The notes beneath the pieces are model-generated. The model did not search any database. It worked only from the letters and a program-made list of their open reading frames with translations, and was not told the origin of the DNA. DNA of 64,000 nt from Thalia democratica (taxonomy: Eukaryota): the NCBI GenBank assembly GCA_965202585.1, contig OZ241833.1, forward strand, positions 44,206,001 through 44,270,000, read 5' to 3'. Made by a program: the position numbers and the translations under genes. Below, one piece after another: positions 40,301-43,300 of the stretch (position 1 is its first letter; every line of letters begins with the position of its first letter).

Positions 40301-43300
40301 ACAATACTTAAAATTTTAGTAATTAAAAATATTATGGTGTGATTTTAGTTAAAACAATGACATGAAGTTGTTTCAAAGAGCTTAGAATGTTTTTTATGAG
40401 CTATTACTTTGTGATTTATATGGTATAAAAGTTTAAGAATAAGTTAAGAGTTTATTAAAAGTATAATTTTAATTGATTAGAAATAGATTAATAATTTAAT
40501 TGATGTTTACAGATTAGCAGAGCACATCACCTATGTGCACACTCATTTAGAGCATCCTCCATTGAAATTCAAACCAATTGATATGGCTGCTATGAGGTAA
40601 ATATCATAGTTATCTTCATAAAAAATATATAAATTTGCTGACAAAAAAAGTTTGGTTTTTAGTCGAGAGCTGTAATTTTATATCTTTGATGAATTAGTTT
40701 AATAGCAAAACTTAAGCATCAATATCTTGATTTTGATGCTATATAAGTCACATTAATATTTTTTCTACAGGAAGTACATCGCACTATGCCAGCAGAAGGA
40801 ACCAGTAGTACCTGCGGAACTCACTGATTACATAACAGCTGCCTACGTGGAACTCAGGAAGGAATCCAGGAGGAGTCAGGATACCACGTTCACATCTGCC
40901 AGGACTCTGCTCAGTATCATGCGACTTGCTACTGCATTGGTTGGTTTCTTTCATTAAATAACAAATCTTTAATATGTTGAACATGAATAAATTGAGTGAA
41001 ATTGGTGAGCAAAGATTACAATTTTTTTGTTCATTTTCAGTTTATTATTAAGGTCAGATTTTGTGTTACTTTCATTTAAAACAAATAGTTAATAAATTTT
41101 TTAGTAAAAATCAGCACCCTTAGCATGATGTTTCTGAAATCCTAAATAATCATATTTAGTTTATTAAACTTTATCAATGTTATTCCAGATAGTATTTTAT
41201 TTATTAGATAAAAGTTTGAGCTAAGATGGTTCTCCAGAATCTTCCCATCATATTTATTTCAAGTGTAAAATCTTTGTAAAAGTTTTTCAAAAAATAAAAG
41301 GTATTTTCTTGAAGGCCGCAGAGTCGAGTGCAAAACTTTTTATATTTTATTATAAGAAAATATTTATTAGTATTGCACTTGTCCCGGCCTTCTAGATTAT
41401 TTTCATTGAATTTAACAAAATTTTCTGACCATAAACTATTTGACGCTCTTGAATTGAAATAGTAGTTGTCATAGCATAAATTATTAACTAATTTTTTAAA
41501 CCCTCAAAAGTTGTGTTTGCGAAAACTGGTAATTGCGCTGTTTTATTTTTTAGAAATTAAAAAATACACATTTGAGATGAAATATTTTTTGAATGTTTAT
41601 TTAAAATACTGTTAACTTTCTACAAAAATGCGATATTGACAGACTAGTCTTGTGTCGGGCAATCAACATTTTACTTTGTTTATTGCACTTCCCTAGACTA
41701 GTTTGTCAATCGTTCACACTTCCCTGTGCACACTGGAAATTCACACTAAACTTCCCTAGACTAGTCTGTCCATCGTTCACACTTCTCTGTGCACACTGGA
41801 AATTCACACCTAACTTCCCTATAGACTAGTCTGTCCATCGTTCACACTTCTCTGTGCACACCAAAAATTCACACCAAACTTCCCTAGACTAGTTTGTCCA
41901 TCGCACAAACACTAAAAGCATGTAAATTCCCTTTTATAGATCTTCTCTGGGCTCGTTAGTCGTAAAAGCATCAATAAATAGTATCTCAGGTTGTTTAGGA
42001 GTACAAAAAACTTGTGCACTTGTTTATTTAAGTACATGTATATAGCATAAAAGTATATATTTTTGAGGCAGTTGGTACACCTTGGTTTAAGTACAGCTTC
42101 GTACACAAATTTTATCTTAAGTGAAGTTTAAGCTCATGTATAATTATATAACAGACTTCAGATTTGTTTTTTACAGGCAGTGATTTTAATTTTACCAATA
42201 TCTTATCATGTTTATGTAACAGCTTTTTTAACTTTTTAATAGTAGTTGTTTTTCACGAAAATTTTTACGTAAAATTCTTTTCATGTAAATCAAAGTCAAT
42301 ATATCACGGTTATGTAGTTGTGGTTTTTATTCAAACATTTTTATTTTCATGTAAAGCATTTTGTTTGAAAGCCGTTATTTGTTAAAATTTCCTGCTTTTT
42401 GTTAAAGCATTCGCTTTTTAAATTTTATAAAAAGTAACTTATTCTTGTGAAAACTTCAAGTTTACGTGTTTTTTTACAGTAACGTTATTAATCAGTATAG
42501 CTGGAATTGTTTTGAAAAATTTTCTATATCACAAATTAAAGAAACATTATTTCATTGCAGTTTTGTTTACCTAAAACTCTTAACCGGATAAGTTTTTTAA
42601 ATGTTGGTCTAGAGCAGCAATTCTATACTACAAGTTATGTAATTTAATGTTTGTTAATTGTGATTTTTACTTATAAGTTAGTATTTAACTGTAATTTTTA
42701 AGATTAAATAAACTCTTTGAATTTTACAATTTTCTATATTTAATAGCTTAAAGTTACAAAATTTAATACTATTTTGTATATTGGGGGTAAATTTGGTAAT
42801 AACTTTCCAAAAAAGGGTAAAACATGTAAAAAGGTTAAGAATCGCTATAGAGGAAAAGTATTATATTTATTGATTTATAAATTTAGCAATCATAAAGTTG
42901 TTTGATCAGTTATACTACTAGAGTTTAACTGAAACGTACCAACTTACTAGCTTGTTATGAAAAGAAATTAACAAATACATTTGAGTCTAAATAATATCCT
43001 AGCAATTTTTATTTTGTTTGCTTTAAGCTGGTAATTTAAAATCAATTATTTTCAACCAATGAAAATTAGTTGCTGGTTAGTATCAAAAACATTAATTAAT
43101 TGAAAAACAGAAAGCTGGAAATATAAGATCATTAATTTTTCCACTTTAATGATTTAATTTATTATAATAATCATTATTAATTTTCCAGGCACGTTTGCGC
43201 TTAGCAACAAGAGTTATTGCGGAAGACATCAATGAAGCCATGAGGTTGATGGAGATGAGTAAAGACACTTTGAATGTTTCAGAAGCTGTTAAGAGGTAAA

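Follow-up and report, generated by a model that had tools for sequence, protein, structure and literature searches.

A second miR-92-seed hairpin in an MCM7 intron of Thalia democratica, very probably the orthologue of Ciona mir-92-2

The window analyzed here, a 64,000-nucleotide stretch of a Thalia democratica genomic contig (OZ241833.1), contains exons that match the Pfam MCM P-loop, MCM_lid and HTH_MCM7 families, the last being the MCM7-specific winged helix (E 1.7e-18). Assembled contigs of run X3, which behaves as RNA and supplies long-RNA contigs, carried GT..AG splice joints at 40195->40513, 40594->40769, 40938->43188 and 43293->43540. Since the third of these joints spans 40939 to 43187, two hairpins, hereafter hairpin 1 and hairpin 2, both lie within one MCM7 intron. 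The features of this intron are as follows.

40939..43187, forward strand: MCM7 host intron, 2249 nt, delimited by the GT..AG joint 40938->43188 in spliced X3 contigs
41313..41392, forward strand: hairpin 1, a canonical miR-92 with the 3p sequence TATTGCACTTGTCCCGGCCT from 41371, the cluster partner (Rfam, fold, conservation)
41630..41634, forward strand: extra basal pairing of GCGAT with ATCGT (41709-41716 region), which lengthens the lower stem of hairpin 2 (fold of 41625-41720)
41635..41710, forward strand: hairpin 2, a pre-miRNA-like stem-loop (fold; consensus structure shared with contigs L006 and L012)
41645..41666, forward strand: predicted 5p (star) TAGTCTTGTGTCGGGCAATCAA, from 2-nt overhang geometry on the fold and by analogy with Ciona
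41681..41702, forward strand: predicted mature 3p guide TATTGCACTTCCCTAGACTAGT with the seed ATTGCAC, its ends estimated from Ciona reads and hairpin geometry
41687..41903, forward strand: tandem array of 3.4 copies of a 63-bp unit, the first of which opens at nt 7 of the mature 3p (TRF and unit alignment)

The exon upstream of the intron ends in ...LRLATAL, an end common to all homologous exon ORFs that we recovered. Low-depth X3 contigs (depth 2-7, against 100-200 on the exons) were present within the intron around the hairpins, between 41487 and 42392, indicating that the run also picks up unspliced MCM7 pre-mRNA. One such contig, at 41487-41634, had 12 mismatches to the window in 148 positions and stopped where hairpin 2 begins. 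Further downstream, DNA-run contigs at 42634-42941 reached a depth of 6000-7800, compared with approximately 40-100 nearby, and showed many alternative joints; this segment is a high-copy dispersed repeat within the host intron.

The original prediction described hairpin 2 as a second miR-92-seed hairpin 310 nt downstream of the first, retaining the seed and the first 10 nt with a different 3′ half to which its 5′ arm pairs, and the sequence is as described. The seed AUUGCAC occupies nt 2-8 of the 3′ arm, where TATTGCAC at 41681-41688 immediately follows the loop. The lower stem joins ATTGACAGACTAGTCT (41635-41650) to AGACTAGTTTGTCAAT (41695-41710) through 16 bp, including one G:U pair, and its core AGACTAGTCT is a self-complementary palindrome. 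Fold prediction, which had been proposed as a check, gave a minimum free energy (MFE) of -31.1 kcal/mol for 41635-41710 with a z-score of -7.95, and none of 200 shuffled sequences was as stable; moreover, the hairpin was retained in both the MFE and centroid structures of a 341-nt context. In silico, 17 of the 22 nucleotides of the predicted guide are paired, and below the 3p end the stem continues for 8 bp and then, with a 2-nt bulge, for a further 5. By these predictions hairpin 2 has the form of a pre-miRNA: a stem of roughly 33-35 bp, a guide lying inside the stem, and a basal junction some 11-13 bp from the Drosha cut. The center of the duplex is loose, with 3p nt 7, 10, 11 and 14 unpaired, and nearly the same pattern was observed in L012.

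Counting both strands, the 64-kb window holds the 10-mer TATTGCACTT only twice, once in each hairpin, and our composition estimate predicts approximately 0.005 further copies in the intron. When the window was folded in 76-nt windows, approximately seven loci, hairpin 2 among them, reached an MFE of -28 or below. Because the 10-mer is confined to the two hairpins and few loci are as stable, a chance origin is unlikely. A search of the whole window with Rfam at gathering thresholds returned no matches, and the E-value mode returned weak sub-threshold matches only. The best score of hairpin 2 was 16.9 bits for mir-312, against a gathering threshold of 55. The mir-92 models matched hairpin 1 weakly (mir-92_2, 30.1 bits; mir-92, 24.4 bits; E ~0.002; gathering 47-70) and hairpin 2 not at all. 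Given that the canonical hairpin 1 also falls below gathering, these models are non-discriminating in this AT-rich genome.

Hairpin 1 folds with a z-score of -6.42 and is conserved in the contigs L006, L012 and L014. The start of TATTGCACTTCCCTAGACTAGT (41681) lies 310 nt past the start of TATTGCACTTGTCCCGGCCT (41371), and the first 10 nt of the two are exactly the same. Hairpin 2 is likewise identical over nt 1-10, seed included, to the other canonical miR-92 sequences compared (cin-mir-92b/Ciona mir-92-1 and vertebrate miR-92a), whereas nt 11-22 read CCCUAGACUAGU in hairpin 2 and GUCCCGGCCU... in canonical miR-92. In both, the 3′ arm is the guide, as predicted for hairpin 2, and the two hairpins belong to the same primary transcript. 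Beyond the 10-mer, a comparison of hairpin 1 with hairpin 2 detected no significant similarity: the 5′ arms scored no better than the null, and 31% of random segments reached the score of the whole hairpin. Among the differences listed between the haplotypes of the sequenced animal, which form an incomplete set, the only one in hairpin 2 is a 1-nt (T) insertion in the loop after 41673. Hairpin 1 carries a heterozygous 1-nt insertion (A) at 41353 in its terminal loop, and the arms of both hairpins are without a listed difference.

Subsequently, we sought relatives of the host intron. A search with the C-terminal MCM7 exon identified L006 and L007, plankton metagenome contigs of 27% GC, whose C-terminal exon is 59% identical to that of the window; the genome of the window is also 27% GC. 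A homologous-protein search with the same exon yielded no candidates. The homologous intron of L006 (653-1038) contains TATTGCACTCGTCCCGATCTGT followed 142 nt on by TATTGCACTGCCCTAGACTGGC, and both fold as hairpins. Intron-versus-intron blastn between the window and L006 returned significant matches for the two mature arms only, which are arranged alike in both introns (E 1.7e-4 and 0.01). Scanning JGI metagenomes with the pattern TATTGCACTNCCCTAGACT uncovered three contigs of one organism (L010-L012, 46% GC), in which TATTGCACTTCCCTAGACTGGT lies 132 nt beyond the canonical miR-92 TATTGCACTTGTCCCGGCCTTT, again within MCM7 after the ...LRLATAL exon. The mature 3p of the window is identical to that of L012 at 21 of 22 positions and to that of L006 at 19 of 22, and the motif CCCTAGACT of the 3′ half is common to all three. 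This occurrence in L006 and L010-L012 demonstrates that the supposedly divergent half is itself conserved. In L014, a Logan contig from run ERR7439267, the same MCM7 exon end is followed approximately 250 nt later by TATTGCACTTGTCCCGGCCTTCC (800-918); the contig ends right past hairpin 1, before the position of any second hairpin. Four further contigs were uninformative: L008 and L015 were too short, L009 was a spliced transcript, and L013 was of vertebrate type. The product of the L015 exon, from an ENA metagenome, was 100% identical to that of window positions 40488-40941, with 88-94% identity at the DNA level; L015 represents either a near relative or a diverged population, sampled from the environment.

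To follow base pairing across species, each species' own MFE structure was placed on the 3p numbering, giving a table of three to four sequences, a small sample. Nucleotides 1-19 of the 3p were invariant across species apart from nt 10, where L006 has a G that pairs with C. Nucleotide 20 shows a compensated change (A:U in the window; G:C in both L012 and Ciona), and at basal-stem positions 24, 26 and 27 the pairs switch among U:A, C:G, G:C and U:G with pairing kept. Positions 28-32 past the 3p start of hairpin 2 were still paired in the per-species MFE structures. Furthermore, RNAalifold recovered one common hairpin with 24 consensus pairs from three genomic sequences, and in this small sample 5 of the 24 pairs had changed on both sides. 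Basal-stem pairing maintained through compensatory changes indicates that hairpin 2 is under selection, and this covariation agrees with the blastn footprint, in which only the mature arms align between the introns of the window and L006. The earlier argument derived selection from a joint change of the two arms as compared with hairpin 1. Selection is shown instead by the cross-species covariation, since the two hairpins cannot be aligned outside the 10-mer.

A full-text literature search with the mature sequence gave no match; the sequence is nevertheless present in the supplement of Hendrix et al. 2010, which lists three Ciona intestinalis loci on Scaffold_168, forward strand (PMC2884542):

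Scaffold_168 27061..27116, forward strand: Ciona mir-92-1, 3p UAUUGCACUUGUCCCGGCCU, 3687 reads (PMC2884542)
Scaffold_168 27361..27412, forward strand: Ciona mir-92-2, 3p UAUUGCACUUCCCUAGACUG, 9448 reads; 5p, 1629.5 reads (PMC2884542)
Scaffold_168 27807..27861, forward strand: Ciona mir-2243, 3p CAUUGCACUGUUAUUGAUCU, 26719 reads (PMC2884542)

Hairpin 2 (UAUUGCACUUCCCUAGACUA) and the 3p of Ciona mir-92-2 (UAUUGCACUUCCCUAGACUG) are identical at 19 of 20 nt, and the mature arm is conserved in three other organisms. In C. intestinalis, mir-92-2 follows mir-92-1 at a distance of 300 nt, and C. savignyi is recorded with an identical mir-92-2 3p (PMC2884542). As predicted for hairpin 2, the 3′ arm of Ciona mir-92-2 is dominant, and its order, strand and spacing relative to the canonical miR-92 agree with those in the window; the distance from canonical to second miR-92 is 310 nt in the window, 142 in L006, 132 in L012 and ~300 in Ciona. 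The 5p read of Ciona mir-92-2 starts opposite nt 20 of the 3p (PMC2884542). Several features set the two loci apart. Hairpin 2 has A:U at nt 20 where Ciona mir-92-2 has G:C, their 5′ arms and loops cannot be aligned, and of the two only hairpin 2 is followed by the tandem array. Possession of this Ciona-type paralogue fits a tunicate, as does a nearest Atlas cluster in which Chordata predominate. A 2021 table places cin-mir-92b at 1p:2635676-2635776 and the 52-nt cin-mir-92e at 1p:2635396-2635447, both on the reverse strand (PMC8001136 Table S2). Judging from matching coordinates alone (length, ~280-nt spacing from cin-mir-92b, strand), Ciona mir-92-2 is probably miRBase cin-mir-92e. The same table classes the Ciona miR-92 loci as intergenic (PMC8001136 Table S2), whereas in the window, L006 and L012 the pair lies inside MCM7 (PMC8001136 for the Ciona classification).

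The third member of the Ciona cluster, mir-2243, is absent from the window: a search of the whole window for an orthologue at up to three mismatches found no match. In L012 (5680-5790; also in L010), an exact Ciona mir-2243 3p, CATTGCACTGTTATTGATCT, forms a good hairpin ~1030 nt past the second miR-92 in the same MCM7 intron, giving L012 the complete Ciona-type trio inside MCM7. Within the window, CATTGCAGTTTTGTTTACCT at 42552-42571, ~870 nt past hairpin 2, matches the mir-2243 3p at ~12 of 20 positions. The fold at the CATTGCAG site (42552) is poor (z -1.37), and ~0.06 occurrences of its 7-mer are expected; the site may be what is left of the third member, or a product of chance.

The 3′ arm of hairpin 2 from 41687 onward is unit 1 of the tandem array. 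With its first nucleotide at nt 7 of the mature sequence, the array reiterates ACTTCCCTAGACTAGT... in units 2-4 but lacks both seed and 5′ arm there. GTCAAT, which extends the pairing with ATTGAC, is kept in unit 1 alone. We looked for the array in L006 and L012, and it was absent from both. In the sequenced animal the array is heterozygous: roughly half of the DNA depth supports the joint 41775->41912 of an allele shorter by two units. Hairpin 2 and the array are both unique in the 801-Mb genome, on which ground we rejected an origin of the 3′ arm from a dispersed repeat or a transposon. An array inside the mature sequence could in principle disturb the 3′ flank of hairpin 2. In the partition function, the 5′ arm pairs with unit 1 at a probability of 0.99 and with each other unit at no more than 0.002. 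These in silico values lend no support to the extra units acting as a decoy arm, and that role was rejected. A weaker reading, that seedless 3′ arms polymorphic in copy number may tune processing between alleles, is argued against by the same 0.99 pairing with the true arm in the model. In the long fold, units 2 and 3 pair together via the palindrome AGACTAGTCT.

Taken together, we regard 41635-41710 on the forward strand as very probably a conserved intronic miRNA gene, the second of an MCM7-intron miR-92 pair and the orthologue of Ciona mir-92-2. In Ciona, mir-92-2 yields abundant reads from both arms (PMC2884542). In the mechanism that we propose, hairpin 2 would be transcribed within the MCM7 pre-mRNA, cropped by Drosha/DGCR8 ~11-13 bp above its basal junction and relieved of its loop by Dicer, whereupon the 3′ arm UAUUGCACUUCCCUAGACUAGU would be loaded into Argonaute as the guide. 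Carrying the AUUGCAC seed, this guide would address seed-matched targets in common with canonical miR-92, and its conserved, different nt 11-19 (CCCUAGACU) would give it 3′-supplementary pairing distinct from that of canonical miR-92.

We give little credence to the idea that hairpin 2, while orthologous to Ciona mir-92-2, is decaying or silenced, with the array and the loose duplex making it a poor Drosha substrate. Four unpaired 3p positions are in keeping with decay, as is the lack of the ascidian third member mir-2243 in the window, which indicates that cluster members have been lost in this lineage. The mature arm is nevertheless intact, at 19 of 20 nt to Ciona and 21 of 22 to L012, its one change, at nt 20, is accompanied by a compensating change in the 5′ arm, and the internal-loop pattern recurs in L012. 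The extended GTCAAT pairing retained by the unit 1 arm and missing from units 2-4, together with a pairing probability of 0.99 between the 5′ arm and the true 3′ arm against 0.002 or less for each extra unit, also speaks against decay. Still more doubtful is the idea that hairpin 2 has no function and owes its fold to the palindrome AGACTAGTCT and the local tandem repeat, its seed matching by accident, a reading we find barely credible. The self-complementary core does contribute 10 of the 16 lower-stem pairs and the 3′ arm is part of the repeat, but neither the palindrome nor the array accompanies the hairpin in the relatives, and only ~0.005 chance copies of the 10-mer are expected in the intron.

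The original prediction itself took hairpin 2 for a lineage-specific miR-92 paralogue, that is, a young copy made by local duplication of hairpin 1 with fast divergence of its 3′ half. The shared strand and intron, the identical first 10 nt and the distance of 310 nt would all fit such an origin, which we now consider very improbable. The second mature sequence recurs in L006, L010-L012, C. intestinalis and C. savignyi, with the CCCTAGACT 3′ half conserved in L006, L012 and both Ciona species, and the failure of hairpins 1 and 2 to align past the 10-mer fits an old duplication. Contamination with the same species is excluded as the source of L006 and L012 by their GC contents (27% and 46%) and divergent MCM7 exons. 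The occurrence in L006, L010-L012 and Ciona therefore marks the paralogue as old, shared and already described. Of the proposed cluster growth inside MCM7, the two-member cluster with a canonical miR-92 in one intron stands; the novelty of local growth does not, the same arrangement being found in L006 and L010-L012. The orthologue of Ciona mir-92-2 thus replaces the lineage-specific paralogue as our reading of hairpin 2.

The host intron also has a vertebrate counterpart. On L013, a fish-like TARA metagenome contig, a vertebrate-type MCM7 exon is followed by AAAGTGCTTACAGTGCAGGTAG and CAAAAGTGCTGTTTGTGCAGGTAG, of miR-106b and miR-93 types (1360-1620); the same exon end and these miRNA types identify the intron as the host intron of vertebrate miR-106b~25. 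That cluster, in MCM7 intron 13 and with miR-25 as its miR-92-family member, shares with the pair described here the host gene and the intron position after ...LRL(A/S)TAL, and both are polycistronic intronic clusters. Their contents differ: miR-106b~25 comprises two miR-17-family members and one miR-92-family member, whereas the pair here comprises two miR-92-family members and none of the miR-17 family. The likeness is one of host gene and intron position.

Vertebrate miR-363 is a second miR-92-family gene and adjoins miR-92a-2 in the miR-106a~363 cluster. That cluster resembles the present one in having a second, 3′-divergent miR-92-seed gene straight after a canonical miR-92. The 3′ half of miR-363 shares only about three positions with CCCUAGACUGGU (CUG, nt 18-20), and sequence proof of orthology between hairpin 2 and miR-363 is unlikely. 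One may still conceive that a pair of canonical and 3′-divergent miR-92 genes in the MCM7 intron was ancestral to tunicates and vertebrates, that hairpin 2/cin-mir-92e is the counterpart of the miR-363 lineage, and that the whole vertebrate miR-17~92-type cluster grew inside MCM7 from such a pair; we put this forward tentatively and hold it to be rather unlikely.

As a further, well-supported orthologue of a tunicate miR-92 paralogue that was already described, hairpin 2 should not be reported as a new miRNA. The young tandem array that starts within its mature sequence is a curiosity for the evolution of miRNA flanks. Collectively, our findings place a second miR-92 beside the canonical one, within the MCM7 intron that hosts vertebrate miR-106b~25, in at least three organisms. 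The mature sequence keeps 19-21 of its 22 nt although the introns are otherwise unalignable and differ in base composition by 20% GC, and the conservation of nt 11-19 suggests, at the level of sequence, a function beyond the seed.
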